In this document: positions 5,901-42,500 of the stretch, in pieces | Layout: each line of letters starts with the position of its first letter | Position numbering within the stretch: the stretch's first letter is position 1 | Assembly (NCBI GenBank): GCA_002269645.1 | Contig: NIVC01000639.1 | Coordinates: 166,972 to 230,971 of the forward strand | DNA from: Macrostomum lignano | Lineage: Eukaryota | Direction: 5' to 3' | DNA length: 64,000 bases | The notes under the pieces: model-generated | Databases searched by the model: none | Seen by the model: the letters and a program-made list of their open reading frames with translations, nothing else | Told to the model about the DNA's origin: nothing | Made by a program: the position numbers and the translations under genes

Positions 5901-6087
5901 GACAGCCGTCCACCTTGCGGGAGAGAATTTCATGCAGATAGCTCACATTCTTTAGCTGTTTGTAGTCGCTGTTCGTGATGCGGAGGCTCCGGCAGATTTT
6001 CGGCTCCGGAACTATGGCCGAGTGGCCGGGCTTCGGCACCCGGAACGCCATCAGCCACAGTAGGACAAGGACCGCGTCGCTTCGCAT
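2947..6087 (-). CDS. EGFR: EGFR/ErbB-family receptor tyrosine kinase, copy A (single exon)
   Basis: Uninterrupted ORF; the likely start is ATG 6087 (MRSDAVLVLLWLMAF, signal-peptide-like) rather than the track's TTG 6132. It has an L1 domain (DGCQFVNGDL...LRNLRAIRG), furin-like Cys-rich domains, L2, a TM helix (LLTVGIGVGLLILVLLVLLPVAYV), and a kinase with GSGAFG, VAIK, HRDLAARN, DFG and SDVWSYGV. Confidence 0.95.
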   Translation of the reverse strand: MRSDAVLVLLWLMAFRVPKPGHSAIVPEPKICRSLRITNSDYKQLKNVSYLHEILSRKVDGCQFVNGDLHVHFLGSHFTGVTIDRNIYEMNTSFLDSIREVSGRVVITGLGIKRLELRNLRAIRGFIYSQSPSHPLYALEIGYCNTPTQIFMPKLVSIQGPGVMFSTSMDIHLYCQLTRKISWSEVFEHKEQHLLDAVTHLNNMTNSSLKPADQANICSHLPECPDDCPMSKEGHRLCWSSTECQMVSKCRKRSCHSCYTRPTGEEECCDNSCLGGCRSFQPSECRACRSVLLAGRCAHSCRNNSYDAAYSRINTAQDSLMQAGNVCVDQCPRDFVIDSNHKYCIVECPDGQMPISGICTPCSVAGVRQGCHVCKDGFQRTLTEEFLGKFSNCSTLAPTELKFKKVLSIDGNQLRLGPLDADSGIWNLKSVRAILVEKFVIKNIPQHIGSLSFLKNLVQVSGHLFVDDCRITHFGFASLKYVSCFGLRNVRGLCARWFPFNFAAKLQDLKEHWPSETDKERSFDNTSEVCRNAVCDPQCRDECWGPGPDMCVACRNFEVDGRCYATCQEAGRYNLSGECQECHSECEGGCSSPSASECERCSNLEEDGKCVAACSSREMRADSKGRCYSVASARLLTVGIGVGLLILVLLVLLPVAYVHYRRRMRKYEIVDLDEYLTDPSNPNAMAKLLIVNDDDVMKQKEVGSGAFGTVYKGILRSSTNKGVRELPVAIKVLRGHSPKLGQELLNEASMLARVQHPCCIRLVALCLTQEPQLITALMPRGCLLEFLRAHRNQIGAERMLRWGLQVAEGMEYLESLGIVHRDLAARNVLLQTPDQVRITDFGLARLLDMSEGEFIQTAGLLPVKWLGVECFESGLFSHKSDVWSYGVLLWEICTFGESPYNPYGIRSVEDITGLLKKGIRLNQPDICSIDFYNILLSCWLPHPESRPSFRDMVGTMNDCLACPSKYIAAASRGVFSDKEVEMTTFGAAIPVDYARRRVNAYIANPVHPNLVISVRRPTNVAAYCRFLDQQRALVEHDDGAYLEPDA

Positions 6088-7289
6088 CTCTTGCGAGTGG
6101 TGCTTAGGGTCTTTTATCTGAAATTGAAGCAATTTTTAGGGCTTCAAAATCTAAATCTCATGTTAAAAACTGGCCAATGCAAATTGCGGAGACCCTCTTG
6201 CTACACAAGACGTGAAGTTCCCCCTTTTTAATTTGCTTTGAGGGTCGAACCGTTTGAGTTTGGCTAGCAGCTACTTATTAACTAGCCACGAAGACTTGTC
6301 AGCTTACCGCAAATTGCTTTGAGGCGCAGTATGAGAAGCGAAATTTCGTGCAACCTGTGCAGCGGGGGCAGCAGCAGCAGCCAAGAGATGCAATCCAGCT
6401 TTTATGCCCTGAGTCCATTAAGCTCACCCACGCCCCGGCCTCTCCAACCCAGGCACAAGTGCAAGAGAAGCAGCCAATCTGACGGTAGTTGCCAGCTGTC
6501 TACACGGTTGCACCCGCGAATTTTCCAAAAGAAAGGCACAGTTGGGTGTCCGTCCGTATTGTCAGGAAACAAGTGACAATGATTTACAAGCCGCCATGCT
6601 GAATATAATCCGTTGTTTACTGCTCTTTGTGTCTGTCGAATCCGCCTGATTCAGTGTGCATTGTTTAATGGCAATTAATTTTTGCGGCAACAAGTCTTTG
6701 ATCTCGCCGAAGTGGGAGCGGCGATCCGAATGAGGATCTGAGGAGAATTCAAGAGTCACGTGAAACCCGTTTACTAGAGGGAACAGCTATTGGGTGCCTT
6801 CTAGAAACAAGTGATCTGAGCAGCTCTGAGCAGCCCAGATCAGGCTTTGTCACCGATTCAGCAGAGAACGTTTTGAGCCGATGAAGTGGAGACAAAAGGG
6901 TATAACTAAGTGGCCGTTTAGCAGACTAATCCAGCGCATTTATTTGATGCAGCGCACTCGGCATTCGGTGCATTGTCTGACTACTTCGATTAGTTGCGAA
7001 GTGGCACTCTTGATGGCTCAATGAACGTTCGAAGAGAAGATTTTAGCGGGAGCAGGTCAACGCCCCCTCACAGCATGCAGCACCAGGACGGTGCAGCCCA
7101 CGTTTTAAAGGTCTGTAGAGAGATCCAAACCAAGAGAACTGAACTCACCTGCAAGACTTGTGATTAACGATATGCCTTTTCAATTTTTGCAGTAGAAATT
7201 TAGAAGCGGCCCACGCTACCGCGGATAAAAACAAGTAACTCACTGCAAGGCTCCAGACACTCCGTCACTGGCCACTAATTTTGAAAAAT

Positions 7290-16578: not shown

Positions 16579-17279
16579 ACCCTGAACATTTAAGTGGTTT
16601 GCCATGATGCCATGCCATTGCCATCGGTTTGTCACAACCCACCAATATTTTCAGTCAGTTTCATTTTATTAATTGGACCAGTGCCCAATCCGAGTCAAAT
16701 GTACAGTGCGCACGGAATGCACACTCCTTGTACACTCACTCACTCTGTGCGCTTGAGGCCTCAGCTTAGGAGTGGGGCTGGGGGGTGCTTGCGATAAGTC
16801 AGCTCGCAGTCAATTGGGTGACGGGGCACAGCGGGGGGGGTCTGCATTTGAAAGGCTGTGCAGTCGCCCGGCCCCATTTTACTGATAAGCGAATGGAGGC
16901 CTGATATGGCATAAAGCGTTGTAGCGATCTCGCAGTGCTTTATATAGCCTGGCTGGCAAACTGCGTGGGCCGCACGAGGAGAAAAACGCAACAAACAGGT
17001 AAACCGACCAAGCTGCCAAGAGAAGCCTTCGATTTGGCAGCTCACCTGCAATCAACTACGCTTTAGTATTGTTTGTTTGTTAAAAACCTTCGCAAAAGAC
17101 TGCCTTATTGGGGCATTTCCCGCAACTGCGCGAGCCTGATAAGATAAAGGCCGATTCAATTCACTTTCAAAAAAGACAGGCTCAGCGAGCGGAAAGGCGA
17201 GGCAAAACGAGTAATTAACAGCTGAAAAATACTGCAGAATTTCCTGGCAGCCTGCGCGAAACAGTTGACGCTGGGAAAC

Positions 17280-20200
17280 ATGACTCTAAGGCTCCGGCTG
17301 CTCACTCTGCAGCTGCTGCTGCTGGCCGCATCAGCTTCAGCCAGCCAGCCGCTGGGCTCCAGCAGCCGCCTGTGCAAGACGGTCTACATCTCAAGTCGCG
17401 AGTACCGCACCCACAGGAACATCAGCCGGCTGCATGCTGAGCTCCAGGCCAGCGTGGACGGCTGCCAGTACGTTCACGGCGACGTAATCATCCAGAACAT
17501 CGGCGCCGACTCCGTCACTGAGGAGCCGATTGACGAGGCCATCCGCGGCCTCCAAACCGACTTCCTGGACTCCATCATCGAGATCAGCGGCCGATTGGTG
17601 ATCAAACGGATTAACCTGGAGCGCATCAGCTTGCGCAACTTGCGCGCCATCCGCGGCTACAACCTGGAGAACACCAGCCCCTTCTTCGCAATGGAGGTTT
17701 TCCAATCGAAGTACCCGGTCAAGCTAGAGCTGCCGCAGCTGAGCGCCATCCTGCAAGGCGACGTCCGCATCATCGGCAACCTGCACGCCGACCTTTACTG
17801 CTACCTGTCCCGCCGGATTAATTGGCCCAGCCTCTTCCAGAGCCACTCGAGCCGAACGCCGCAGCAGTTCAACGACAACGTGGAGATCATGACGCTGGGC
17901 GACCAGCAGATCAACGTCAGCGACTACGCCGCAACCGAGAAGGTCTGCACGTCGCTTCCAGCGTGCAACTCCAGCTGCCACACGGAGAAGTCCGGGCGGC
18001 AGCTCTGCTGGTCCGACAGTCCCGGGGGCTGCCAGAGCTTCCACGGGTGTCTCGTGCGCCCATGTCGGAACTGCTTCCGCCATCCGTACACAGGCAACGA
18101 GGAGTGCTGCGAAAGCGACTGTCTTGGCGGTTGCTCGAACAAATCGGACGGCTGCTTTTCCTGCCGCGATGTCAGCCTGGACGGCGTCTGCAAAGGCAAC
18201 TGCCCGATGAAGACCGATCTGAACCCCGGCACCAACAAGATCGAGACGCGGAACTCCAGTACAACTATGAAGCGAGTGGGCAACATCTGCGTGAAACAGT
18301 GCGAGATGCCCTTCGTCACCAGCTCCAACGACAAGTACTGCGTGAGCGAGTGCCCTCTGACCGAGATTCCCGTCAATGGCATCTGCACGCGCTGCGCGGC
18401 CAAGCACCAGTCTGCCTGCGAGACGTGCACCGTCGACACGCTAATCATGAGCGACAAAGTGGCGCAGGCTTTGAAGAACGGCAACTGCACGATTTGGCGG
18501 ACCGACTCGTCGCTGGATATCAACTCGGAGAAGCTCAACAGCAGTGCCAGCCTCGAGACGCTGGAGTTTCTGCGAATTTTCTATGGCCGACTGTTCATCA
18601 AGCGGACGGATCGGCTGGTGGACAATCTGCGGTTCCTTCGCAATCTTAAATTTGTTTCGAACAACTTTGGCATCATGATGCTGCACACGCGGTACCTGGG
18701 CCTCGCCAGCCTGCGATACGCCAAAGCTCTCTGGCTCATCAAGATCAGCGGGCTCTGCGAAGCTTGGTACCCTAGCAGAAGAATTCGACAGATTACAGAG
18801 GTCACGAAAGAATTTACCATAGGCACCCGTGAAATCAGCTTCGACAACACGAGCGAGGTGTGCAGGAACGCCGTCTGTGACCCCCAGTGCCGCGACGAGT
18901 GCTGGGGACCCGGATCCGACATGTGCGTAGCCTGCCGGAACTTCGAGGTGGACGGCCGCTGCTACGCCACGTGCCAGGATTCCGGTCGGTACAATCTGAG
19001 CGGAGAATGTCAGGAGTGCCACAGCGAGTGCGAGGGCGGCTGCAGCAGTCCGAGCGCCTCCGAGTGCGAGCGCTGCAGCAACCTGGAGGAGGACGGCAAG
19101 TGCGTGGCCGCCTGCAGCAGCCGAGAGATGCGCGCCGACTCGAAGGGCCGCTGCTACTCGGTGGCGTCTGCGAGACTCCTCACCGTCGGCATTGGCGTCG
19201 GGCTGCTCATTCTGGTGCTGCTGGTGCTGCTGCCGGTGGCCTACGTGCACTACCGGAGGCGCATGCGAAAGTACGAAATCGTCGACTTGGACGAGTACCT
19301 GACGGACCCGAGCAACCCGAACGCCATGGCGAAGCTGCTGATTGTGAATGACGACGATGTGATGAAGCAGAAGGAGATTGGCAGTGGCGCGTTCGGCACG
19401 GTGTACAAGGGCATCCTGCGGTCGAGCACGAACAAGGGAGTTCGCGAGCTGCCCGTCGCGATCAAGGTGCTGCGCGGCCACAGTCCGAAGCTGGGCCAAG
19501 AGCTGCTGAACGAAGCGAGCATGCTGGCCAGAGTGCAGCATCCATGCTGTATCCGACTGGTGGCTCTGTGCCTGACCCAGGAGCCGCAGCTGATCACGGC
19601 GCTGATGCCTCGGGGCTGTCTGCTGGAGTTCCTGCGAGCGCACCGCAACCAGATCGGTGCGGAGCGAATGCTGCGCTGGGGTCTACAAGTGGCAGAGGGC
19701 ATGGAGTACCTGGAGTCTCTGGGCATTGTACACCGCGACCTGGCTGCCCGCAACGTGCTGCTGCAGACTCCGGACCAGGTGAGGATCACGGACTTCGGGC
19801 TGGCCCGTCTGCTGGACATGTCGGAGGGCGAGTTCATCCAGACGGCCGGCCTGCTGCCGGTGAAGTGGCTCGGCGTGGAGTGCTTTGAGTCCGGACTGTT
19901 CAGCCACAAGTCGGACGTGTGGAGCTACGGCGTGCTGTTGTGGGAGATCTGCACGTTCGGTGAGTCGCCCTACAACCCGTACGGGATCCGCTCGGTGGAG
20001 GACATCACCGGCCTGCTGAAGAAGGGCATCCGACTGAACCAGCCCGACATCTGCAGCATCGACTTCTACAACATCCTGCTGAGCTGCTGGCTGCCGCATC
20101 CGGAGTCTCGGCCGAGCTTCCGCGACATGGTCGGCACCATGAATGACTGCCTCGCCTGCCCGTCCAAGTACATCGCACAGCGGTACAGCACCATGGACCC

Positions 20201-20552
20201 GAACCTGTTCGACACCGATGATGCTGTCGGGTTTGTGACCGAAGTGTCAAAGCCGGCCGCACCGCAGCCGTTGCAGAAAAGCCCGGACAAGCACGGCGTG
20301 GAGCTGAACTCGTACATCTCCGACCCGACCTCCTGCTCGGCATCGAAACTGCGTAACTCGCCGGCACGGGCGCTGCAAGCTCAGGCCAGCAACACCAGCG
20401 AGAGCGCCGGCCTGCTGAGCGGCCAGATGAGCGTGCCCGACGCAAACGACGACTACCTGACGCCGACGTCGCCGGGAGATAACTACGGAGACGTGCACGA
20501 CGGTGGCGGAGCATGCGGCCTGGACGACTACCTGACGCCGAGGAAGGCGTGA
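17280..20552 (+). CDS. EGFR: EGFR/ErbB-family receptor tyrosine kinase, copy B (single exon)
   Basis: Uninterrupted ORF; likely start ATG 17280 (MTLRLRLLTLQLLLLAASASA, signal peptide). L1-CR1-L2-CR2-TM-kinase with the same catalytic motifs as copy A, and a Tyr-containing tail (YSTM, DDYLTP twice). Confidence 0.95.
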   Translation: MTLRLRLLTLQLLLLAASASASQPLGSSSRLCKTVYISSREYRTHRNISRLHAELQASVDGCQYVHGDVIIQNIGADSVTEEPIDEAIRGLQTDFLDSIIEISGRLVIKRINLERISLRNLRAIRGYNLENTSPFFAMEVFQSKYPVKLELPQLSAILQGDVRIIGNLHADLYCYLSRRINWPSLFQSHSSRTPQQFNDNVEIMTLGDQQINVSDYAATEKVCTSLPACNSSCHTEKSGRQLCWSDSPGGCQSFHGCLVRPCRNCFRHPYTGNEECCESDCLGGCSNKSDGCFSCRDVSLDGVCKGNCPMKTDLNPGTNKIETRNSSTTMKRVGNICVKQCEMPFVTSSNDKYCVSECPLTEIPVNGICTRCAAKHQSACETCTVDTLIMSDKVAQALKNGNCTIWRTDSSLDINSEKLNSSASLETLEFLRIFYGRLFIKRTDRLVDNLRFLRNLKFVSNNFGIMMLHTRYLGLASLRYAKALWLIKISGLCEAWYPSRRIRQITEVTKEFTIGTREISFDNTSEVCRNAVCDPQCRDECWGPGSDMCVACRNFEVDGRCYATCQDSGRYNLSGECQECHSECEGGCSSPSASECERCSNLEEDGKCVAACSSREMRADSKGRCYSVASARLLTVGIGVGLLILVLLVLLPVAYVHYRRRMRKYEIVDLDEYLTDPSNPNAMAKLLIVNDDDVMKQKEIGSGAFGTVYKGILRSSTNKGVRELPVAIKVLRGHSPKLGQELLNEASMLARVQHPCCIRLVALCLTQEPQLITALMPRGCLLEFLRAHRNQIGAERMLRWGLQVAEGMEYLESLGIVHRDLAARNVLLQTPDQVRITDFGLARLLDMSEGEFIQTAGLLPVKWLGVECFESGLFSHKSDVWSYGVLLWEICTFGESPYNPYGIRSVEDITGLLKKGIRLNQPDICSIDFYNILLSCWLPHPESRPSFRDMVGTMNDCLACPSKYIAQRYSTMDPNLFDTDDAVGFVTEVSKPAAPQPLQKSPDKHGVELNSYISDPTSCSASKLRNSPARALQAQASNTSESAGLLSGQMSVPDANDDYLTPTSPGDNYGDVHDGGGACGLDDYLTPRKA

Positions 20553-21578
20553 GCTGCCGGCCTACCACCCTTGCACCGGTTGACCTGGGAGAATTTTTAT
20601 TTGTGGATTGAATTTTTATCCTTTTTGCACTCGCTTTACCATGTAATGTTTCAATTTCTCAATATTTAATAATGTAGGTATTACAAACTCTTATGAATCA
20701 GTAAGCTGATCAGTCTGGGCACTTGGGTCAATGGTGCTCAGCCTCCCCTAGCAGTGAGCAGCGGGAACTCTGAACTCTGTAAAGGACGCCAATCAAATAA
20801 GAGAATCGCAGCCGACCTCAGTTGTTTGCAGACAAAATAGGTTTCTCGAGCTTCAGAATTGGCTGCCTTTTTTACCTGTACCTGGCCCTGGGCTTTTTGT
20901 GATTGCTATTGCGGCTCTTCGTGTAGCGCTTGGGTTGCTTGTGATAGCAATTTTTTAACTGTATTAGCTTGCACAAACATATTTGTACCTGTCATGCAGA
21001 GCCCATTGCAAATTAATTGTACGTAACAGTTCACCAATAATTATCTATTTTTGTTATCATTGAATATTAATTATTAACAAGTTTGTTGTTGTAAAGACAA
21101 ATATTTAAGCAACTAAAATGTGTATCATCTTCATGTCTGTATTTCATTCTCTGCTTTGCGTCTCGCTTGTAATTGTAATCGAAAAGCTTTTGTTGATGTT
21201 GTTGATGCGCTGCATGTGTGACGCAATACATCTGGTAATGAGCCTTGTTCGTTTCCAGAGCAGTATGGATTGCTTAATGTCATTTCAGCAACTATTTTTA
21301 ATGCTCTATACAAACTTTTACCTCTGTGTTGTCGCTTCTCAATAACAAATCAGTTAATTGGAATTATGAATATTTTGCTCGGATTTTGAATCCCCAATCC
21401 GTCAATGTGCTGCAAAATTTGATTGAATAAAAAACTGCTGGCATCACAGAAATTTTCTTTTTTCGCTTGGCTCGACCTGGTTGTTGGCGTCATCGCTGCA
21501 GTTTTCATAAATAAAAGCATCAACGGTCATTACAAGACAAGCAAAATGCAAAGTTTTACACAGCACGTGACAAGCTGC

Positions 21579-24500
21579 CACGGTTGGGCTGGAATAAGAT
21601 TTCGGGGTAAAAAAATGCCCAATAAAACGACCACTGCAGTGTGATAGAGGAACATCTCAGCTGCTAGGGGAATATTTTCCTAAAATGAAATCGGTTTGTC
21701 CTGACCAGTTATGCCTAATTATGTTAATTAGCTAGCATAATTAATTTATGTACTCGAAATTAGCCGTTTCCTTCGTGTGAAATCGCCTAAAAACTGCTTT
21801 TATGGCCTGGTCTGCTTTTATGTTTTTATGATATAAACTGCTATTATACTGGATGAGCAGTTGCTAATCAGAATGTATGCAGCAGCCAATGCTCTGCTCT
21901 AGCTTCAATATGAACTGTTGTGCTCTAGGTCTCACGCACTCTCTTTGCTCAATATCGAAATTAGCACATGAACGTACGTACGTTCGTACTGTTCTATTTC
22001 ATATGCGTCGGACTGTCAGATGTACATTGATTATTGCAACTTTCATAGCCAACTCATATCAGCACTCAAATAAATATCACAACCAATACTCAAGTCAAGG
22101 CCAAATTCAAAACATTTGTCTCTTGCATCAGTGGCCAGCGATCAATTTCAGAATTTCAGAATATGCCGAATGCAAAAAAATCACATGAGGAGTGCAGAGA
22201 GAGTCTGTGTTTGCTCTGTTTGCGGAAAGCCTCGCGCTCAATTTGGTCGGTAGCCAATTTTTCTGCTGAGGATTTGGTGCCGAATTTCGCCTCTGTACAG
22301 CACATTCTGCCGACCGGCTTGTGTGACGGGTGTCGACGCATCATTTCATCTCTATCTGGTCCAGCGCCTCGTGAGTTGCCACCAAGGCTAAACTATGAGC
22401 AGATGGTTGCCGACCTGCAGAGTCTGCCTCCGTCCACAAGAAATAATCCGCATTGCTCTTGCGAACTGTGCGAGCTTGCCAGATCGAAGAACAGCAGCAA
22501 GTTGACAACTTCTGTCAGCTCTTACAGTACTGGCGCTGCTGCATCTCGTCCAGGACGACCTCGAAAACATCCATTGTCGGCAGCTGATGCAGCACAACCA
22601 CAGTTCATTTGCTCGTTTTGTCGATCAGAAATTGGCCGTGGCAAGAAACACAACTGCTCAAGAGCAACGCGACTGACTAATCTGCAGCAGGGTGTCAGTC
22701 CTGATACGCAGGACATGCTGGCCAGCAGCTGCATATCAACAAAAGCTGCAGCAAGTGGCTCCAGCTGTGTTTCCTTGTCACGGATGGAAGGTGGTCGCCC
22801 AATGCGCGTGACTGTTGGTGCTAGTGTGGGCAATGGAGCAACCAGCTTCCCTGCAACTTCTATCAGCACAATGAAGACACTGAAAGGTGTGCTGAATCTT
22901 AGCAACAATCAGACGCTGCAGGTCGCGCAGGTACTGAGAGCTGGTGCAAGCTCTTCGCGAGCAGTTGAATCTAGGCTGAAAGATTCATTAGTGACTCAGA
23001 ATCGTGTATTGGAAGACTTTTTTAAACTTAAGACACTTCAATTCGAGCTGTCATCTTCTGCCATTGGTGATCGTGCTGCTGTCCTCTGCACTGATGCTTC
23101 GCGCCTCATTGAATTTATTGTCCAACAGCGAGGAGCCTCTAACTTCGAATGCCGGCTGGGGCTTGATGGTGGCGGAGGTTTTTTTAAGATTTGCGTGTCT
23201 GTCGTTGCGTCCACGTCTGACCATCAGGTGCACGGCGGTGCTGCTGCAGTTCACGAAAGTGTGCGACGCCACTCACAGTTCAATGACGCCGGAGTGAAAA
23301 AAATTATAGTTCTCGCAATCGTCAACGACATCTCAGAAACGTACAAAAATGTAAAAACACTGCTACAGGCTGTTTCTGTGGTAGAGCTGTCTGCTGTGAC
23401 TGTCACAGACATGAAGCTAGCAAACATTCTCTGCGGACTCCAGCCTCACTCGTGTGCTCACCCATGTCCGTACTGCGAGTCTACTGCACCACTGACGACA
23501 AGCGGCAGGCCACGAACCCTCGGTAGAATTCGGCAGAAAGTGCAGGAGTTCAATTCTGCTGGACGAGTTTGGAGCAGAGCGAAGCAGTTCATGAACTGTG
23601 TCAATCTGCCGCTGCTGGCTGGTGATGATGACGAGGAAGTGCTGATGCTGCTGCCCCCTCCTGAACTGCATCTTCTGCTCGGAATCAGTAACAAATTGCT
23701 TGATTCTTTGAACGAAGCTTGGGGCGAAGACCGCGGATTTGCATGGCTACAATCTCACGGCATCGTGCGAGCGGGGTACCGCGGCGGCACAATGGAAGGC
23801 AACGCTTGTCGCAAATTGCTGCTGATGGCTGAGGTTCTTCTTGAAGACGTTCCTCATGAACTACAGCCCTTCGCCCAGTGCTTGATTTGCTTCAACAGCG
23901 TTGTTAATGGAGCATTTGGCCAGGAATTGGTCCCGGATTTTGGTGAGCGAATCGAAAATTTTGGAGCTGCATACCTGGCACTGGGATTGACTGTCACGCC
24001 CAAAGTGCATGTTCTCCTTTGCCACGTGAGCGACTTCTGCCATCGCACTGGTCGTGCACTTGGAACTTGTAGCGAACAGGCAGTAGAGAGCGCACACTCG
24101 GATTTCCAGCGGACTTGGCAGCGCTACAGGCTGCCAGCCGATCACCCACAGTTCGGCAATAGGCTGCTGCAGGCAACAGTGGCGTATAACAGCTGGCATA
24201 TCTAATGCAGTGACATATTTAATGCGGTGATGGCTTTTCATTTGACTAAATTTACTGTCGTGTTGTGCAGCCTACTTTGCTGCATGCTGTTGTTACCAGC
24301 ACTACTACATGGATGAAGAAAAACAGTATAATAGGAGCAATACTTCCATGACAATTTGTGAAGGGATCTATCTAAAAGTTCAACATCCAAAAGTTTGAAT
24401 ATTGATTCTATTGGCAATGGAAGTAATTCAAAAGAAATATTCAATATCTAAAAAAACTTTTGACCCAGACTTTTCTGCTCAGATTAGCAATATTCTCTTC

Positions 24501-25035
24501 TTTATCTGTGACATGTATCTCGTAGTACCTGCATGCTAAAACATAAACTGATCATGAATTGCTATATAAGTTATATTATAATTATATCATATATTTAATT
24601 TTATTGATATAAATTTTAATAGGTGCTATCCAAATGTCCAACCTGCTGCTCAGTTTTGAAGAGACCCTTTCTCTGAAACGCTGGATATTTCTATTTTTTT
24701 CTTTAATTTTTGAGTACTAATAATATGAACTACAAAGTGCTCACTTTCTATAACTAATACTAATATATATTGATATTAAATAGCTACAGATTTTAACGCG
24801 AACACAGCTCATAAAAGCAGTTTTTAGGCGATTTCACACAAAGGAAGCGGCTAATTTCGAGTACATAAATTAATTATGCTAGCTAATTAACATAATTAGG
24901 CATAACTGGTCAGGACAAACCGATTTCATTTTAGGAAAATATTCCCCTAGCAGCTGAGGTGTTCCTCTATCACACTGCAGTGGTCATTTTATTGGGCATT
25001 TTTTTACCCCGAAATCTTATTCCAGCCCAACCGTG
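21579..25035 (+). mobile_element. Complete Transib/RAG1-like DNA transposon (3,457 bp)
   Basis: Termini CACGGTT...AACCGTG; 226-bp TIRs at 21579-21804 and 24810-25035 (4 mismatches seen); 5-bp TSD GCTGC at 21574-21578 and 25036-25040; one intact 680-aa ORF. Confidence 0.88.
22163..24205 (+). CDS. RAG1/Transib/Chapaev-related DDE transposase with N-terminal Cys-rich zinc-binding region and AT-hook
   Basis: LGLDGGGG (first D), VTDMKLANILCGLQ..CPYC (second D plus CxxC), TPKVHVLLCH (HxxxxH) and SEQAVESAH (E). The order parallels RAG1 D600/D708/C727-C730/H937-H942/E962. N-terminal CLLC, CDGC, HCSCELC, FICSFC, plus RPGRPRK. Confidence 0.85.
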   Translation: MPNAKKSHEECRESLCLLCLRKASRSIWSVANFSAEDLVPNFASVQHILPTGLCDGCRRIISSLSGPAPRELPPRLNYEQMVADLQSLPPSTRNNPHCSCELCELARSKNSSKLTTSVSSYSTGAAASRPGRPRKHPLSAADAAQPQFICSFCRSEIGRGKKHNCSRATRLTNLQQGVSPDTQDMLASSCISTKAAASGSSCVSLSRMEGGRPMRVTVGASVGNGATSFPATSISTMKTLKGVLNLSNNQTLQVAQVLRAGASSSRAVESRLKDSLVTQNRVLEDFFKLKTLQFELSSSAIGDRAAVLCTDASRLIEFIVQQRGASNFECRLGLDGGGGFFKICVSVVASTSDHQVHGGAAAVHESVRRHSQFNDAGVKKIIVLAIVNDISETYKNVKTLLQAVSVVELSAVTVTDMKLANILCGLQPHSCAHPCPYCESTAPLTTSGRPRTLGRIRQKVQEFNSAGRVWSRAKQFMNCVNLPLLAGDDDEEVLMLLPPPELHLLLGISNKLLDSLNEAWGEDRGFAWLQSHGIVRAGYRGGTMEGNACRKLLLMAEVLLEDVPHELQPFAQCLICFNSVVNGAFGQELVPDFGERIENFGAAYLALGLTVTPKVHVLLCHVSDFCHRTGRALGTCSEQAVESAHSDFQRTWQRYRLPADHPQFGNRLLQATVAYNSWHI

Positions 25036-25241
25036 GCTGCAGTTTGGCTTGCATCATTTTTTTCTTTTTAAAGGAGATTCCATAGAAACGCATGGCTCAC
25101 AGACCACCCGTGTGTTTGCACCGGTGTAAGGCCAGTGCAAATGGAAGTGTGCGCTTGCACTTTTGCCCGATTATGACGCCACTACGCCAGCACGAATCCA
25201 TTGGCAGTTGCGCTCTCTTACGCAGGTCCTAAACCAGCATG

Positions 25242-25794
25242 CAGGGGCGTCGCCACCGGGACATGGGGGACATGTCCCCCCCAGTGATAGCTATGGGGGT
25301 GACATCTGCCAATGCTTTGTCCCCTCCCCCACCCAGACTTGTGACTCGTTATGGAAATCGATATTTTTGCTTCCCGGTGAAAAAATATATAGCGCCTGTG
25401 GCACCAAAATGACTCCCTAAAATTATTGACTGCGACGCCAAAGTTAATGACAGTGGTGCTAAAGTTAATGACTGCGGCGCTAAAGTTAATGACTGCGGCG
25501 CTAAAGTTAATGACTGCGGCGCTAAAGATAATGACTGCGGCGCTAAAGTTAATGACTGCGGCGCTAAAGATAATGACTGCGGCGCTAAAGTTAATGACTG
25601 CGGCGCTAAAGTTAATGACTGCGGCGCTAAAGATAATGACTGCGGCGCTAAAATGAATGCCTGTGGTGCTAAACTGAGTGCCTGCGGCGCCAAAGTGAGT
25701 GCTGACAGCACCGATTCTGAAAAGAATGTCCACATACATGCAGAATTATTCGCTTTGAACCCCCCTCACCATAAAGTCCATGGTGACACTCTTG
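25242..25794. mobile_element. hAT-type MITE (553 bp) carrying an internal 21-bp minisatellite
   Basis: Starts CAGGGGCGTCGCCACC and ends GGTGACACTCTTG (degenerate TIR); exact 8-bp TSD CCAGCATG at 25234-25241 and 25795-25802; internal array CTAAAGTTAATGACTGCGGCG at about 25435-25652. Confidence 0.78.
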
Positions 25795-33069: not shown

Positions 33070-36000
33070 TAGAGCTGTCACGAGATCTCGACGAGACGAG
33101 ATTCGAGACGAGATCTCGACATTTTTTCTCGTCTCGAGAAATCTCGAATTTTGTTAAGAAATTCGGGACGAGATTTAAGAATTTTTCTGATACCTTTTTT
33201 CAAAAACTTTTAAGTGATAAGATATAAAAAGGGGAGCAAATTTTTATATAAATACAACTATTTGTTGTAACACGCTTGATAGGGCAATTTTCAAATGGTA
33301 AAATCTAGCCAATGTCGAGCAGTTTTAGTTATTTAACGAACGTCGTTATATACGAGTTTGCATTGCATATGCGCTCTTTTAGTTATCATTTCAGTTCTGC
33401 GGCAAGGTGTATCACAGCAGACTCGAAGACAATCTGCTTTTGACGAATTACTACCTGACTTTGTACTCGTAAGTAACCTTTAATTAATATATTAATGCAT
33501 GAAGCAAATTTTTAAACATTAAAAATATAATTGTAACTTTTCGTCTTACTGGGTTCATTATTTCTTTCTTTCTGATGGCAGGCACATTTTATTTTTTGAA
33601 AGTTGTAAAAACTGCTGCTGTATACGCAAGGCGCCTGCATTGGCATCAGTCATGTAGGCACATATTATTGCCTTTAATTGGCTTTAACAATATTTAAACT
33701 AGAGATGTTATTGTACAGGTACATGAGTACAGTATGTAGCACATGGAAAATATAAAAAGGTAAAATTATACCTACTGATTACGTATAGAAACATGTAACA
33801 AACTACACGAAGATGGTGAAAGAGAGCAAACAACAAACCTGATGGTGAACATGTAAAGCATAGTTATAAAAAGGTTTATGTAAATGCTTGCGCATTTTAT
33901 AAGTGATTTGATAATATATAATAGATATAAACACTGAGTATCCGCTTGGCAGCTTATGGCACATACACAAGTGATCGAGTATGAGTAAATAAGCATGCTT
34001 TTGTTTTTCTGCATGATTTCGAATCAAAGTTTAATTTTTTAAATAATGTACCAGCGTAAGTATAGTTTCAAATTTCCTATCAAAAGTGCTCAAGCTGCAG
34101 AATGCTAATGGCTAAAACAAACAAATAAAACCATGGTTCTATAAGCTCAACCATACATATAAAACGATGTAAGAGTTTCAAATCTAAAATCTGAACTTTC
34201 TAGGACTCGATCTTGAATTAATGTGAAATTTAGTCACTATTCTCAGTATAGTCAGTCACAAAGAAAAACAGTTGAGTTACTACATCAAATCAGCTGCGGC
34301 ATGTTGCTGGCCAAAAACAGCAGGCGCTCGATATTTTCTCCCTTCAGACTTCGTCTTCTTGGTTCGTAGATTCGGCCAGCCTTTGAAAACAATCGTTCAC
34401 TTGGCACCGACGTCGGTGGGGCACCAAGATAGCGCCGAATGAGAGACTTCAAGTCTGATGGAAGGTTGTCTGAACGCAATTTATTACGCCAATGATCTAG
34501 AGGATCAGAACTCATTGGCAGAAGTTCTGGATTGGCAAAATAGTCGTGAAGTACCTTCGCTGCTTTCCCAGCAGGCATAGGACCTTGGGCCTGAGATGAC
34601 TGAACGATGCCATGAAACTCCTCCAAAAATGACAAACGTTTAGTTTTGCCGGCTCTAGCAGGTTGGTCCTCAGATTCGGCAACAGCGCTGATAGTTTCAT
34701 GGCTGTCGTCCTCAGAGCCAAGATTTTCGACGTTGGCATAGTAGTTCGACTCCTCGTTGCCTGTGTTAGGGAATAGATAGTTTGTGAAACGTAAAGAGCA
34801 TTGGAGTACATACATGTAAAGCCCAAGGACATAAACATTGTAATTTTCTACCACCTTACCTGCCGCTGTAGCCACAGACAAGGTAGGTGGAGCACGCGAT
34901 CCAAGCTCCTGGAGAATGTAGTCCTTGATTATTTCGTGCTGAGAGCTATCAAAGAAAGCCAATTTGAAGCGGCCATCTAAGGCAGTAGAAGCCTGATAGA
35001 ACTCATTTGTCAGGAAGCACTCGAACCTGCTCTTGATTGCATTAATCAATGACCGATGCACACTGCTGATTTGGGCAAAGTCGATCTTGTCCAGCTTACG
35101 TAGCAGCATTCGAATGATAGGAATCAGAACAGATGTTGACTCAGCATCCCGACTCAACTGCTCAGTGGCTTCATCAAGCGGCTCAAGTAGAGTTACTAGC
35201 CTAGCAGAGATGTCAAGCTCATTCTCAGTCAATGCCTGGAGCGTTGTTCCAGAAGAAGCACTGAGCACAGCAGCAACAGCAGCATGCTGTTCATTGTAGC
35301 GACGGAGCATATGCAGAGAAGAATTCCACCGAGTTTCCACATTTTGAATCAGTCGGTTTTTGGGCAGACCTAAAGCCCCCTGGAAATTCTGTAGCTGCTT
35401 TTGTGCTGGATGTGACCGGTCAAAGTGGCCTACAAGGCCCTTTACTTTTTTTATGATGGTCTGCGTCAAGACTCCTTCCTTCAAGGCCTCTTTGACACAG
35501 AGCTGCAGAACATGGCAGGCACAGGAGGCATCCGGAACTTGAAGAAGAGATGCTGCCTTTCGAATGTTGCTGCCCCCATCACGCAGGAGCAGGGTCACAT
35601 GGTCATTAAGCTGAAACTCTTCAATAACATTCAGGAGGATGTTAGAGAGGGCCTCCCCAGTGTGAGCAGACTCGATTGGTGTAGCAGCTAGGACTAAATT
35701 TTTTCGCTCCAAGTCTTGAGTGACGAAGTGCCCTGTCACACTGAGTAAAGCAATGGCCTGATTAGCAGATGACCAGCAGTCGGAAGTGACTGCCACCTCA
35801 ACATCATCAGGCAGCTGCTGTTTGACTGTTTGCTTGGCCAACTCGTACTCTTTTTCTATAAGCTTCTGGTAATAATTTCTTGATTTCAGTTCATATCGAG
35901 GCTCCAAACCAGCAACTAAGCGTTGGAAGCCTAGATCCTCTACAATAGAGACAGGCTGACTGTCCACTGCAATCATTTGGACAATCAGCCTATCAATAGC

Positions 36001-37671
36001 ACGACTCGATGGGTTATTTTTATCCCATGGCTTGTTGACTCGAAACATTGAGTCAATTTTTGCTTGCTTCGATGGAGGAGGACAAGATTGCATGCATGAT
36101 GAATCATTGTCCTTGTTGGTACTTGAATTATGGCTGCTTGCAGCACTAGTATTCTGATTGCTTGTAGTCGATACAGAAAAAGGTACTCGTGCTGCCTTAG
36201 CCTTTTCCTCATTTTTTAACGTCTCGTACAGACCAACGTGTTTGTTCTGAAGATGTCTCCAAAGTCCAGTAGTTGAAGAGCTTGTTGTTTTTAATTCTGC
36301 CTTGCATGAGAGGCAGATTGCAGCTTCTTTAACAGGAACTCGGTTAAAATGTTTCCAGATAGGATTGTCCATAATCATGCAGGCAAACAGGTTCTATCTA
36401 GTTATTATATAATTTTAGGCTGCTTCTAACGAATTTTTATCAAATCTAATATCAATTTGAGCTGAAATAATCAGGAAGATTTATAAAGTTAAAAGAAAAA
36501 TAGAATATTTCTTGACTAGAAGATGGCCATAGGAGATTGACTCTGGAATGCTATAGTTTATTTCTTGATTTTGATACTTACAAATCAGCACATTAGTATA
36601 GGAGCCTACATACCTACCTATCTATATATCTATCAATCTACACCTCACCTACATACCTACTACACTTATAGTTTGCTAGAACTAGCCACAGGTGGGCGAA
36701 CAGGGAACACAGTGGAATTGAGACACCTGGGCAAACAGGGAACACAGTGGAATTGAGACACCTGGGCAACTATAACTATATAGCTAGCTAATAGCTATGA
36801 CAAAGTTAAGTAACTAGCCAATTATTAATAAATATTTGATTTCTAGATTTCTAAGTACTTAAGTAAAACAAATTCAAATTTATAACAGCTAGCTAGCTAT
36901 AAAAGTTTGATTAGTTTGACTTTAGTTTGACCATTGATTTTTCAATTTTTGTTTTATAATTGATTAGTAAAAAAAGAAAAAAATTATTAACCAAATAAGT
37001 TATATAACCTATTAATTTGAAGTTACTACTAGGCCCTAATACTTACTACAATAATAAATAAGTCATTAATAGATAATAGAAGTAGCTAAATATATATTTA
37101 TAGATTTAAACATGTAGAACATTGTCTTCTACTAAGATTTCTACTTTCTTTAGATTTCTTTAGATTTAGTCTACCTTGCAATATTAAGCCAATAATTTTA
37201 TAGATTGCATATTTTACTTTGTTGCAATTTCCTTGGCTTAGTTAATAAACTATTTAATCTATAGACTAACATAAACTTAATGCAATATTATACAATGCAT
37301 ATATATATATATATGATAATAAATATCAATATCATATATAGGCCTAGTAGGTCTAATTGTAATTAGTAATAGTAGGGCCTATATGTTACTAGCATAAATG
37401 CTTATGAATAAATAGCAAAGAATTAAAACTAGAATTAAGAAAGAATCAATTAGATTCTGAAAAATCTAAAAAATATATTTTAGAATTATATCTTGTCAAG
37501 AAATTTAAGGCAAGATAAGACAAGACAAGAGCAAGACAAGATGCAATTCTGAATTCTGAAATATATTTTTTTAGATTTACTTTGTCTCGTCTCGTCTCGA
37601 ATTTCTCGACTTATAAGCCTTTCTCGTCTCGAATCTCGTCTCGAATAAAATCTCTAATTTTGACAGCTCTA
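33070..37671 (-). mobile_element. Complete autonomous-looking hAT transposon (4,602 bp)
   Basis: TIRs TAGAGCTGTCA / TGACAGCTCTA; subterminal GAGACGAGA/TCTCGTCTC repeats; exact 8-bp TSD ACTATTTC at 33062-33069 and 37672-37679. Confidence 0.93.
34285..36378 (-). CDS. hAT (Ac/ZBED-like) transposase with BED finger; probable 99-bp in-frame intron at 34859-34761
   Basis: BED finger (WKHF..CLSC..LWRHLQNKH), TSDCWS (D), RDGGSN (D), CACH, ETRWNS, PTSVPSERLFS (E; hATC domain). The GTAAGG...CACAG segment encodes out-of-character sequence. Confidence 0.92.
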   Translation of the reverse strand: MIMDNPIWKHFNRVPVKEAAICLSCKAELKTTSSSTTGLWRHLQNKHVGLYETLKNEEKAKAARVPFSVSTTSNQNTSAASSHNSSTNKDNDSSCMQSCPPPSKQAKIDSMFRVNKPWDKNNPSSRAIDRLIVQMIAVDSQPVSIVEDLGFQRLVAGLEPRYELKSRNYYQKLIEKEYELAKQTVKQQLPDDVEVAVTSDCWSSANQAIALLSVTGHFVTQDLERKNLVLAATPIESAHTGEALSNILLNVIEEFQLNDHVTLLLRDGGSNIRKAASLLQVPDASCACHVLQLCVKEALKEGVLTQTIIKKVKGLVGHFDRSHPAQKQLQNFQGALGLPKNRLIQNVETRWNSSLHMLRRYNEQHAAVAAVLSASSGTTLQALTENELDISARLVTLLEPLDEATEQLSRDAESTSVLIPIIRMLLRKLDKIDFAQISSVHRSLINAIKSRFECFLTNEFYQASTALDGRFKLAFFDSSQHEIIKDYILQELGSRAPPTLSVATAAGKVVENYNVYVLGLYMYVLQCSLRFTNYLFPNTGNEESNYYANVENLGSEDDSHETISAVAESEDQPARAGKTKRLSFLEEFHGIVQSSQAQGPMPAGKAAKVLHDYFANPELLPMSSDPLDHWRNKLRSDNLPSDLKSLIRRYLGAPPTSVPSERLFSKAGRIYEPRRRSLKGENIERLLFLASNMPQLI

Positions 37672-39527: not shown

Positions 39528-42500
39528 ATGAGCTCCAGCAGCTGCATCATCAACAATGGCAGCTGCAGCAGTGCCAGGCCAGTTGGCCACCCACACGGTG
39601 CAGTCCAGGTGGCATCTGACAATGAAGACAGCACCTCCGACCGCTTTGTGCTGGCCAGCGACTCCCTGCCACACAGCCCCGCGGCCTCGGCTGGCGACCC
39701 CGCCAGCTCTGGAGATGCCGCGGCACCCTGCACAGTCGCCTTTCGTACAGAGCACCCAGAGGGCACCCGCCTGCACCGCCTGGCCTTCGCTGGCGACGTG
39801 GCCGCCCTGGCCAGGGCTGTGCGCGACCTCGGATCCGAGGAGGTGGCCCGGCTTATCAATATCCAGGATAAGCATGGTGAGAGTCGCCGCTGTTTTGGTT
39901 GCTATGGAAACAAGCTAACTGTCGGCCTAACTGTGTCAGATCTAGATAGAGTATTTAGTATATAGTGGATTGCTTGATGAATTAGGTAGTATGGTTAAGT
40001 TCACGACAAACTTCTGGGCGCTGCCCAGATCTGGCTCTGATAAGCAGCCGAAGTTGTTGCTGGGCAACCATGTTTGTATTTATAGGTGAAATCTTAAAAA
40101 AACAGTAGTCAATCTTGGTTGCTAGGCAACCATATTTGTAGGTAAAATCTTAAAAACAGTACTTAATCTTGGTTGCTAAGCGTCTATCTATCTTTGTGTG
40201 AAGGTAAAATCTTTAAAAAAAAGTAGTTAATATTGGTTGCTAGGCAACCATGTTTTTCTGTAAGTAAAATCTTTAAAACAGTACTCAATCTTGGTTGCTA
40301 GGCATCTATCTTTGTTTATAGGTAAGATCTTGAAAAACAATACTCAATATTGGTTGCTAGGCAACTATCTTTGTTTTTAGGTAAAATAGTAAAAAACAGT
40401 ACTCAATCTTGGTTGCTAAGTAACCATCTTTGTTTGTAGGTAAAATCTAAAAAAACAGTACTCAATCTTGGTTGCTAGGCAACCATCTTTGTTTGTAGGT
40501 AAAATCTTAAAAAACAGTATTCGATCTTGGTTGCTAGGCAACCATCTTTGTTTGTAGGTAAAATCTTAAAAACAGTAGTCAATGTTTGTCAATGGGGATT
40601 GTGTTTCGGGATTTGTTTCGAATAGGATTTGTTTGTAGGTAAAATAGTAAAAACAGTACTCAATCCTGGTTGCTAGGCAAGTTGAACTAATCAAAGCATC
40701 TATCTTCGTTGCCAGGCAACACAGCGATACACATCGCAATAATGCGCGGTCACCACGCCTGCGTGACGCTACTGACGGGCGAGGGCGCCTCCGTGCGGAT
40801 CCGCAACCGGGAGTGCTGGTCACCCATCTGCGAGGCCGTCAGCTATGGGGACAGGAAGACCAGTAGGTGGCTCGCGTGTTGCAAGGCTGGGATGGTGTGT
40901 CTGGGTCTGTGTTGCGGCTGTCTGTAATGTGTCTCTTTTTGTGTTGTGTCTGGGTCTGTGTTGCGGCTGTCTGTAATGTGTCTCTTTCTGTGTTGTGTCT
41001 GGGTCTTTGAGTTTTTTCTGGGTTTCTGTGGTCTGTATCACTGAGCTATTTCCGTCTTTGTGGTGTTATGTGACTCTGAGGTGTGTCTTGGTCTATGTGT
41101 TGTCTAGATCTCCAGTTATCTGCAGTACCTTTGTGTTTTTTACCTGTGTCTCTCAAGGTATCTCTGGGTCGATCTGGGTCCTTTCTTCTGTCTGGATTTG
41201 CCTGGGTCTCTTAGGGTATCCCTGGGGTCTCTCAGGGTATCCCTGGGGTCTCTCAGGGTATCCCTGGGGTTTCTCAAGGTATCCCTGGGTCTCTTAGGGT
41301 ATCCCTGGGTCTCTCAAGATATCCCTGGGTCTCTCAAGATATCCCTGGGTCTCTCAAGATATCCCTGGGTCTCTCAAGATATCCCTGGGTCTCTTAGGCT
41401 ATCCCTGGGTCTCTCAGGGCGTCCCTGGTGTCTGTGTATGCCTGGGTCTCTATGGGTGTCCCTGGTGTCTGTGTATGCCTGGGTCTCTATGGCTGTCCCT
41501 GGTGTCTGTGTATGCCTGGGTCTCTCAAGGTGTCCCTGGTGTCTGTGTATGCCTGGGTCTCTCAGGGTGTCCCTGGTGTCTGTGTATGCCTGGGTCTCTC
41601 AAGGTGTCCCTGGTGTCTATGTATGCCTGGGTCTCTCAGGGTGTCCCTGGTGTCTGTGTATGCCTGGATGTCTCAGGGTGTCCCTGGGTCTCTCAAGGTG
41701 TCCCTGGTGTCTGTGTATGCCTGGGTCTCTCAAGGTGTCCCTGGTGTCTGTGTATGCCTGGGTCTCTCAAGGTGTCCCTAGTGTCTGTGTATGCCTGGGT
41801 CTCTATGGGTGTCCCTGGTGTCGGTGTATGCCTGGGTCTCTCAGGGTGTCCCTGGTGTCTGTGTATGCCTGGGTCTCTCAAGGTGTCCCTGGTGTCTGTG
41901 TATGCCTGGATGTCTCAGGGTGTCCCTGGGTCTCTCAAGGTGTCCCTGGTGTCTGTGTATGCCTGGGTCTCTCAAGGTGTCCCTGGTGTCTGTGTATGCC
42001 TGGGTCTCTCAAGGTGTCCCTAGTGTCTGTGTATGCCTGGGTCTCTATGGGTGTCCCTGGTGTCTGTGTATGCCTGGGTCTCTCAGGGTGTCCCTGGTGT
42101 CTGTGTATGCCTGGGTCTCTATGGGTGTCCCTGGTGTCTGTGTATGCCTGGGTCTCTATGGGTGTCCCTGGTGTCTGTGTATGCCTGGGTCTCTCAAGGT
42201 GTCCCTGGTGTCTGTGTATGCCTGGGTCTTTCAAGGTGTCCCTGGTGTCTGTGTATGCCTGGGTCTCTCAGGGTGTCCCTGGTGTCTGTGTATGCCTGGG
42301 TCTCTCAGGGTGTCCCTGGGTGTCTGTGTATGCCTGGGTCTCTATGGGTGTCCCTGGTGTCTGTGTATGCCTGGGTCTTTCAAGGTGTCCCTGGTGTCTG
42401 TGTATGCCTGGGTCTCTCAAGGTGTCCCTGGTGTCTGTGTATGCCTGGGTCTCTCAAGGTGTCCCTGGTGTCTGTGTATGCCTGGGTCTCTCAAGGTGTC

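Follow-up and report, generated by a model that had tools for sequence, protein, structure and literature searches.

The window is a stretch of 64,000 nucleotides of the flatworm Macrostomum lignano (GenBank assembly GCA_002269645.1, contig NIVC01000639.1, positions 166,972 to 230,971 of the forward strand), and the element under study is a DNA transposon of 3,457 bp located at positions 21579-25035 of this window. The element is assigned, with a probability of about 0.9, to the Chapaev group of DNA transposons (CMC or 'CMCT' clade) as an autonomous and recently active member. Features characteristic of Chapaev were all found: CAC...GTG termini, a target site duplication (TSD) of 4 bp, a DDE transposase bearing the motifs C(2)C, LH and H(4)H, and an N-terminal Chapa domain. 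The transposase is a genuine remote homologue and a structural match of RAG1 and Transib; it is a distant cousin and not a member of their lineage. A preliminary description of this DNA had tentatively placed the element in the RAG1 ancestral lineage. The relationship with RAG1 is retained from that description; the lineage is replaced by Chapaev, with 4-bp TSDs in the family.

Structure of the element

The element begins with CACGG and ends with CCGTG (extended ends: CACGGTTGGG...CCCAACCGTG). The two arms of the terminal inverted repeat (TIR) match at 222 of 226 positions, i.e. four mismatches and 98.2% identity. The transposase is encoded by a single uninterrupted open reading frame (ORF) of 680 amino acids, without intron. 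TIRs and ORF are as the preliminary description had reported them. The terminal 29-mer is found within the window only at the two ends of the element. The 3′ region (about 600 bp, non-coding) contains no second ORF, and the other ORFs of at least 80 amino acids overlap the transposase ORF or the 5′ leader; the element therefore carries no RAG2-like gene. Neither a paralogous empty site nor further fragments of the element were found in the window and the fetched loci. The features are given below with their position in the window and their strand.

21574-21578, left flanking direct repeat GCTGC (5 bp here; family norm, 4 bp)
21579-21804, plus, 5′ TIR of 226 bp beginning with CACGGTT (inverted-repeat comparison)
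21579-21585, plus, heptamer-like terminus CACGGTT (CAC invariant among related families)
21609-21617, plus, nonamer-like A-tract AAAAAAATG, 23 bp inward of the heptamer
21805-22162, plus, internal 5′ non-coding stretch from TIR to start codon (presumed promoter and 5′ untranslated region)
22163-24205, plus, intact single-exon transposase ORF, 680 amino acids (ORF call; homologues)
22184-22471, plus, N-terminal Chapa zinc-finger domain, residues 8-103 (alignment; 72 bits to Chapaev-2_HM)
22550-22564, plus, AT-hook-like PGRPR, residues 130-134 (linker modelled with low confidence)
22610-22657, plus, small CCHC zinc finger: C150, C153, H163, C165 (71-sequence alignment)
23021-24121, plus, RNase-H-like DDE catalytic core with insertion domain, residues ~287-653 (alignment, profile, model)
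23165-23167, plus, D335
23408-23410, plus, D416
23465-23476, plus, C435/C438
Inside the DDE core, plus, H503 (LH motif)
24008-24025, plus, H616/H621
24086-24088, plus, E642
24206-24809, plus, internal 3′ non-coding stretch, AT-rich (no second ORF)
24810-25035, minus, 3′ TIR ending with ...AACCGTG (inverted-repeat comparison)
24997-25005, A-tract block of the 3′ TIR, CATTTTTTT in plus-strand letters
25036-25040, right flanking direct repeat GCTGC

Copies and mobility

The window copy was compared with nine further copies of the same family and with one sister family (L006), all loci being taken from GCA_002269645.1. The nine copies are 98.5-99.97% identical to the window copy and are found at unrelated sites. 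Seven of them (L001-L005, L010, L011) are exactly 3,457 bp long and show 1-11 differences from the window copy; identity among the seven full-length copies is 99.7-99.97%. The 680-amino-acid ORF is kept in seven copies and damaged in three, namely L007 (576 amino acids), L011 (535) and L012 (452); L007 and L012, which are 98.5% and 98.7% identical to the window copy respectively, carry indels and truncated ORFs. An identical transposase is encoded at five other loci. In the M. lignano annotation, this identical protein and others that are 99% and 56% identical to it are labelled as hypothetical proteins.

In a test for segmental duplication, no homology was found among the flanks of L001-L005 and of the window copy; these copies therefore correspond to independent insertions. 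The window copy and L005 differ by one base. Two TIR substitutions (element positions 189 and 3408, window positions 21767 and 24986) are common to these two copies and absent from L001-L004, so half of the TIR divergence was inherited and not gained after insertion. By these substitutions, the window copy and L005 form a sub-lineage. Since two of the four TIR mismatches are shared in this way, TIR identity is no clock for a DNA transposon, and youth is better supported by the identity of full-length copies. Judged from these sequences, the family looks currently or very recently active. The proposal that the element is intact, young and possibly active is thus strengthened: it is a very young and probably active DNA transposon.

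Target site duplications

The window copy is flanked on both sides by GCTGC, as previously reported. In register, a direct repeat is obtained for k=5 or k=2 only; the 4-mers CTGC and GCTG are shifted by one base. Since a 5-bp match has a probability of about 1/1024, this repeat is not due to chance. An alternative register, in which the TIR is extended by GC, was checked by eye and rejected: it gives no 3-bp TSD. The TSDs of the other insertions are as follows. L006 encodes a protein 56% identical to the transposase of the window copy, and its TIR begins with CACGGTTAGGCTGG; the last three loci are relatives from metagenomes, which were found with an 8-sequence alignment and whose termini were fixed by eye and by a search for the pattern CAC...A5.

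L001, same family: ATCT
L002, same family: TTGC
L003, same family: AACC
L004, same family: TATA/AATA (3/4 match)
L005, same family: CTCG
L007, same family (98.5% identical): GGCA
L010, same family: AGAG
L011, same family: AGGG
L012, same family (98.7% identical): CGAT
L006, sister family: GAGC
L019, metagenome relative: CACC
L037, metagenome relative: TTAT
L053, metagenome relative: GACT

The 13 other insertions thus include 12 exact 4-bp duplications, one 3/4 match and none of 5 bp; a 5-bp duplication is found in one insertion of 14, that of the window copy. A 4-bp match arises by chance with a probability of 1/256 per insertion, and the stagger of the family is therefore 4 bp. No TWA pattern is found among the TSDs of the M. 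lignano family. Five loci (L008, L009, L013, L014, L015) gave no usable TSD, their TIRs being cut by contig ends or none being detectable, and the TSD of L016 is unreadable, its left end lying within a (CG)n run.

Two origins are possible for the GCTGC repeat of the window copy: the stagger may occasionally be of 5 bp, or a 4-bp TSD was altered by a 1-bp indel or an error of assembly at one of the junctions (CC at 21578/21579, GG at 25035/25036). If the duplication is truly of 5 bp, the empty site would read AAGCTGCAG.

Transposase and placement in Chapaev

The transposase belongs to a very large and unnamed family. In an exhaustive search, 3,463 clusters of homologues passed E<=1e-3, and 460 of these also passed E<=1e-30. 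A search with the single protein gave neither a Pfam match nor a direct PDB sequence match. The Pfam matches of the homologues are weak or uninformative: DUF1280 (a Caenorhabditis elegans family), zf-AD and AprA_N. The zf-AD matches, found for several homologues, are in line with the presence of a ZAD-like ZFa in the Chapa/NZD domain (NZD, N-terminal zinc domain).

Conservation is given according to an alignment of 71 sequences (A2); a position is called conserved if invariant or found in at least 65 of the 71, unless a count is given. No variation is seen at D335, D416, C435xxC438 and L502-H503; H616xxxxH621 and E642 are found in 69-70 of the 71 homologues. The N-terminal Chapa domain is a two-zinc domain with the ligand pattern HExxRxxxCxxC ... 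PxxxCxxC ... TRxxxxCxCxxC, and its eight zinc ligands (H8, C16, C19, C54, C57, C98, C100, C103) are invariant or nearly so. The CCHC finger at residues 150-165 is conserved, and the GRP core of the AT-hook is found in 48/71 homologues.

For the N-terminal part of A2 (residues 1-125), a profile was compared with published Chapa domains. The sequences of the latter were copied from Additional file 5 of PMC4411706, a table read by optical character recognition, and are slightly noisy. The scores are:

Chapaev-2_HM: 72 bits
Chapaev-1_AA: 48 bits
Chapaev-5_HM: 41 bits
Chapaev-1_HM: 41 bits
PMRAG1L: 25 bits
Chapaev3: at most 20 bits
Chapaev-1_BF (RING-bearing): 18 bits
Vertebrate RAG1: at most 6.5 bits

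With the whole-protein profile, the Chapaev3 transposase Garfield_BM, whose sequence was taken from the supplement of PMC4079192, scores 77.8 bits; amphioxus RAG1L reaches 24.5 bits and RAG1 no more than 19.6 bits. According to these scores, the family falls within the RING-less subgroup of Chapaev already present in Repbase.

The published diagnostic features of Chapaev are C(2)C, LH and H(4)H motifs, CAC/GTG ends and TSDs of 3-4 bp (PMC4079192). CAC...GTG termini are found in the window copy, in the nine other copies, in the sister family and in the relatives L016, L019, L037 and L053. C(2)C and H(3-4)H motifs are common to EnSpm, Mirage, Chapaev, Transib and RAG1, which constitute the 'CMCT' clade, with CA..TG ends and TSDs of 2-5 bp (PMC12730594); these motifs therefore cannot alone indicate Transib or RAG. 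In the scheme of Kapitonov and Koonin, a broad Transib superfamily includes Chapaev and Chapaev3 among its clades; Kojima places Chapaev in CMCT (PMC12730594).

Relationship with RAG1 and Transib

The A2 profile, searched against the whole PDB, matches only RAG1L (6B40, E 8e-5) and RAG1 (E 0.0025-0.018), the match with 6B40 covering residues 413-632 only. According to the preliminary description, the D-D-E triad, CxxC and HxxxxH can be aligned with those of RAG1 in the same order. The profile alignment bears this out: the second D, CxxC, LH, HxxxxH and E (D416, C435/C438, H503, H616/H621, E642) are in register with those of RAG1 and RAG1L. HzTransib chains gave no sequence match at E<=10.

The AlphaFold2 model has a mean predicted local distance difference test score (pLDDT) of 90.1 and a predicted template modelling score (pTM) of 0.71. 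The modelled catalytic sites fit an RNase-H fold: D335 in a strand, D416 just past strand 411-415 and E642 in a helix. At E<=1e-3, all 21 Foldseek matches in the PDB are RAG1 or HzTransib, followed by Hermes at E 0.07. The best E value is 7e-12 for RAG1 (553-660 alignment columns; template modelling score, TM, 0.42-0.56) and 9e-8 for HzTransib; RAG1 and HzTransib matches together span about 505-660 columns.

A 2026 preprint relates the Chapa domain to the NZD of RAG1 and RAG1L and to ZAD, and reports that Transib has no Chapa domain. The kinship of Chapaev, Transib and RAG1 is already in the literature (PMC4411706, PMC12730594), and the picture of the origin of RAG is unchanged.

Layout of the termini

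The ends of the window element and of the sister family are conserved at positions 1-14 and 26-41, the intervening stretch having diverged. Termini are given below as heptamer, spacer length in bp and A-tract.

Window: CACGGTT-23-AAAAAAATG
L006: CACGGTT-22-AAAAAATTG
L016: CACGCCC-23-AAAAATTCT
L019: CACAGTT-21 to 24-AAAAAATGT
L037: CACAGGT-22-AAAAAAATT
L053: CACGGGT-22-AAAAAAATT
L054: CACAGCC-25-AAAAATTAC
L014 (candidate terminus): CACCCCT-23-AAAAAAAAT

Six to seven families thus follow the layout of Transib and of the 23-bp-spacer recombination signal sequence (RSS23): CAC, a spacer of about 23 bp and an A-tract. The A-tract is found at positions 29-33, together with the conserved CAC, in these six to seven families, and A31-A35 is invariant in four families. 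The consensus of Transib TIRs is CACAATG, a 23-bp spacer and AAAAAAATC; that of the RSS is CACAGTG, a spacer and ACAAAAACC; the essential positions of the RSS are positions 1-3 of the heptamer and 5-6 of the nonamer (PMC1131882). The A-tract AAAAAAATG of the window element matches the Transib nonamer AAAAAAATC at 8/9 positions, and both sets of RSS-essential positions are conserved in the Chapaev-type ends. The spacer is essentially equal at both ends of each element, so that there is no 12/23 asymmetry; most Transib families likewise show none (PMC1131882).

It is possible, although somewhat doubtful, that the bipartite layout (CAC, spacer of about 23 bp, A-tract) is not an invention of Transib and RAG but is common to a subgroup of Chapaev, where it would be read by a RAG1-like body and an N-terminal AT-hook or element like the nonamer-binding domain (NBD). 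If this were true, the architecture of the RSS would predate the split between Chapaev and Transib, possibly together with the chemistry of nick and hairpin, and RSS-like reading could be tested in M. lignano on the first Chapaev element that is apparently live. No paper describing this layout in Chapaev was found by a search that did not include the original Repbase Reports, and the layout may already be known.

Several other termini were observed. The 3′ end of L015 (reverse complement, CACCCAT-12-AACAAAAGA) and the 5′ end of L009 (CACTTAT-12-AAAAAACTA) have an RSS12-like spacing. Both loci are on short contigs, their partner ends are cut by contig ends and their termini are candidates; they hint at variants with a 12-bp spacer. 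The left terminus of L016 (about 62-78) reads CGCGCCC in place of CACGCCC and abuts the (CG)n run; it may be a terminal mutation or an artefact of metagenome assembly. In L037, the Chapaev-like element (3349-6309, TSD TTAT) lies inside a longer inverted-repeat structure (3251-6725) beginning with TGAGGCAGAATC, which may indicate a nested insertion into another TIR element.

Alternative assignments

Membership of the Transib/ProtoRAG lineage proper, i.e. the RAG1-ancestral one, had been proposed from the CAC ends and the 5-bp TSD. The 5-bp repeat of the window copy agrees with it, as do the ends with heptamer, 23-bp spacer and A-rich nonamer, and RAG1, RAG1L and HzTransib are the only sequence or fold matches in the PDB. 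However, the CAC terminus is found clade-wide and the 5-bp duplication in the window copy only, the 13 other insertions providing exact TSDs of 4 bp in 12 cases and of 5 bp in none. The Chapa domain, absent from Transib according to the 2026 preprint, is present; RAG1L is matched marginally (24.5 bits) and HzTransib is not matched in sequence, whereas Chapaev3 scores 77.8 bits; and there is no RAG2-like ORF. Membership of this lineage is thus very unlikely. Both outcomes that the preliminary description had named beforehand as counting against it were observed: other copies have 4-bp TSDs and the N-terminal domain nests with published Chapaev. A previously unrecognised lineage between Chapaev and Transib, combining a 4-bp TSD, a Chapa domain, RSS23/Transib-type ends and a RAG1-like fold of the whole body, accounts for the CAC and A-tract at 29-33 in six to seven families, for Foldseek alignments with RAG1 that extend beyond the RNase-H core (about 550-660 columns) and for 3,463 clusters having no Pfam model of their own. 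It is nevertheless improbable: the N-terminus matches published elements, Chapaev-2_HM (72 bits) and Chapaev-1_AA, -1_HM and -5_HM (41-48 bits), which indicates that the lineage is already in Repbase under Chapaev, and Chapaev itself is already included in the broad Transib superfamily (Kapitonov and Koonin) or in CMCT (Kojima). A domesticated host gene, RAG1-like or derived from Chapaev, would fit the intact ORF and the annotation of the identical protein as a hypothetical host protein, but hardly the 226-bp TIRs, the TSDs and the at least 10 near-identical copies at unrelated loci, some of them decaying; its probability is negligible.

Some points weigh against the assignment to Chapaev as an active element. 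The duplication flanking the window copy is of 5 bp and not of 4 bp. The placement is based on the N-terminal domain, one Chapaev3 core sequence, motifs and TSD length rather than on a full phylogeny. We infer activity from copy identity, and the flank-hairpin mechanism and the reading of the A-tract are likewise deduced. No Chapaev transposase is known to have been studied biochemically, and experimental validation is lacking according to the 2026 preprint.

Proposed mechanism

The multiple TIR-bounded insertions with 4-bp duplications demonstrate that integration is of the cut-and-paste type, with a stagger of 4 bp. From the homology with RAG1 and HzTransib, both ends would be paired by a dimer of the transposase. 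The catalytic core would read the terminal heptamer-like block with CAC, and the A-tract about 23 bp inward could be read by the N-terminal AT-hook (PGRPRKHP, in a disordered linker) or by an NBD-like region. The nonamer-binding domain of RAG1 has a GGRPR motif, and it is because of the analogy with this motif that reading of the A-tract by the AT-hook is proposed. A nick at the border between CAC and the flank would be followed by release of the element, probably via a hairpin on the flank, as for RAG1 and HzTransib. The 3′-OH ends would then attack the target 4 bp apart, and gap repair by the host would create the TSD.

Neighbouring features of the window

An intact ORF of 697 amino acids at 34285-36378 (minus) encodes a hAT transposase with a BED zinc finger and a hAT dimerisation domain. 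It was considered as a second Chapaev copy and rejected, this hAT transposase being unrelated. Inverted subterminal repeats CGAGACGAGATTCGAGACGAGA at 33092-33113 and 37622-37643, about 4.5 kb apart, flank this ORF; ORF and repeats probably constitute a second intact DNA transposon in the window.

Two ORFs, at 2947-6132 (minus, 1,061 amino acids) and 17265-20552 (plus, 1,095 amino acids), encode receptor tyrosine kinases of EGFR type and are paralogues in opposite orientation. Their domains are Recep_L, Furin-like, GF_recep_IV and PK_Tyr. The second one is followed, about 1 kb downstream, by the Chapaev element. About 380 bp downstream of the element, at 25417-25696, a tandem repeat of 21 bp is found (13.3 copies; consensus CTAAAGTTAATGACTGCGGCG); it yields spurious repetitive ORFs on the minus strand (25218-25739). 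Two other ORFs, at 41198-43078 (plus, 626 amino acids) and 44822-46504 (plus, 560 amino acids), have no significant Pfam family and overlap ORFs in alternative frames.

Significance

Transgenesis is established in M. lignano. Because the flatworm is tractable in this way, the element could be used as an experimental outgroup for the gain by RAG1 of signal recognition, hairpin chemistry and the 5-bp stagger. This tractability is combined with apparent activity: seven intact copies with at most 11 differences in 3,457 bp, a confident RAG1-like predicted fold, a Chapa domain and RSS23-like ends. Development into a transposon tool is also conceivable. If functional, the RSS-like layout of its ends reaches beyond Transib. 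To our knowledge, no Chapaev or any other CMC transposase has been studied biochemically. Experimental Chapaev systems are described as lacking in the 2026 preprint on the NZD of RAG1.

Comparison with known systems

Chapaev transposons, including a RING-less subgroup, were reportedly described by Kapitonov and Jurka in 2007. The RING-less elements used here, compared over their N-terminal ~100 residues only, are Chapaev-2_HM, -1_HM and -5_HM from Hydra and Chapaev-1_AA from Aedes. The M. lignano element shares with this subgroup CAC...GTG termini, the 4-bp TSD, the motifs of the DDE core, the ligand pattern of the Chapa domain, a single ORF and the lack of a RING finger. It differs in being a new family from a new host, a free-living flatworm, and by the 5 bp of the window copy.

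Chapaev3 elements (Merrow, Garfield, Conan; PMC4079192) likewise have CAC ends and a homologous transposase, in which C(2)C, LH and H(4)H are found. Their TSD is a 3-bp TWA, located between A and T, whereas that of the M. lignano family is of 4 bp. Their Chapa domain is of another type, begins with CxxxxDxFCxxCG and scores at most 20 bits. EnSpm/CACTA elements have CACTA termini and a 3-bp TSD, and Mirage elements a 2-bp TSD; the element studied here has CACGG and 4 bp.

Transib (HzTransib, PDB 6PQN/6PQX) shares with the element CAC termini, a bipartite TIR with CAC heptamer, spacer of about 23 bp and A-rich nonamer, the DDE triad, the CxxC/HxxxxH zinc site and the lack of a RAG2-like gene. 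The overall fold is similar to that of HzTransib (Foldseek E 9e-8; target-normalised TM 0.55). Transib differs by its GC-rich 5-bp TSDs and by the lack of a Chapa domain; neither a 5-bp family TSD nor a Transib core recognisable in sequence and devoid of Chapa/NZD domain was found in the M. lignano element, and HzTransib is not matched at the sequence level.

ProtoRAG elements carry a RAG1L and RAG2L gene pair, convergent or adjacent, inside their TIRs, and one transposase ORF was found here. The cores of TransibSU and RAG1 are more than 30% identical over about 600 amino acids (PMC4411706); structural alignments of the M. lignano transposase give about 12% identity, which is below the level of RAG1L. 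RAG1 and the RAG1L of ProtoRAG (PDB 6CG0, 3JBW, 6B40) nevertheless have motifs in register with those of this transposase (E 8e-5 to 0.02), provide its best structural matches and share with it an N-terminal zinc domain, homologous to the NZD, and a GRPR-type basic motif. Compared to them, the M. lignano element has no RAG2 partner gene, no RING finger and no 12/23 asymmetry; it generates a 4-bp and not a 5-bp stagger, and it is a mobile element and not a domesticated recombinase.

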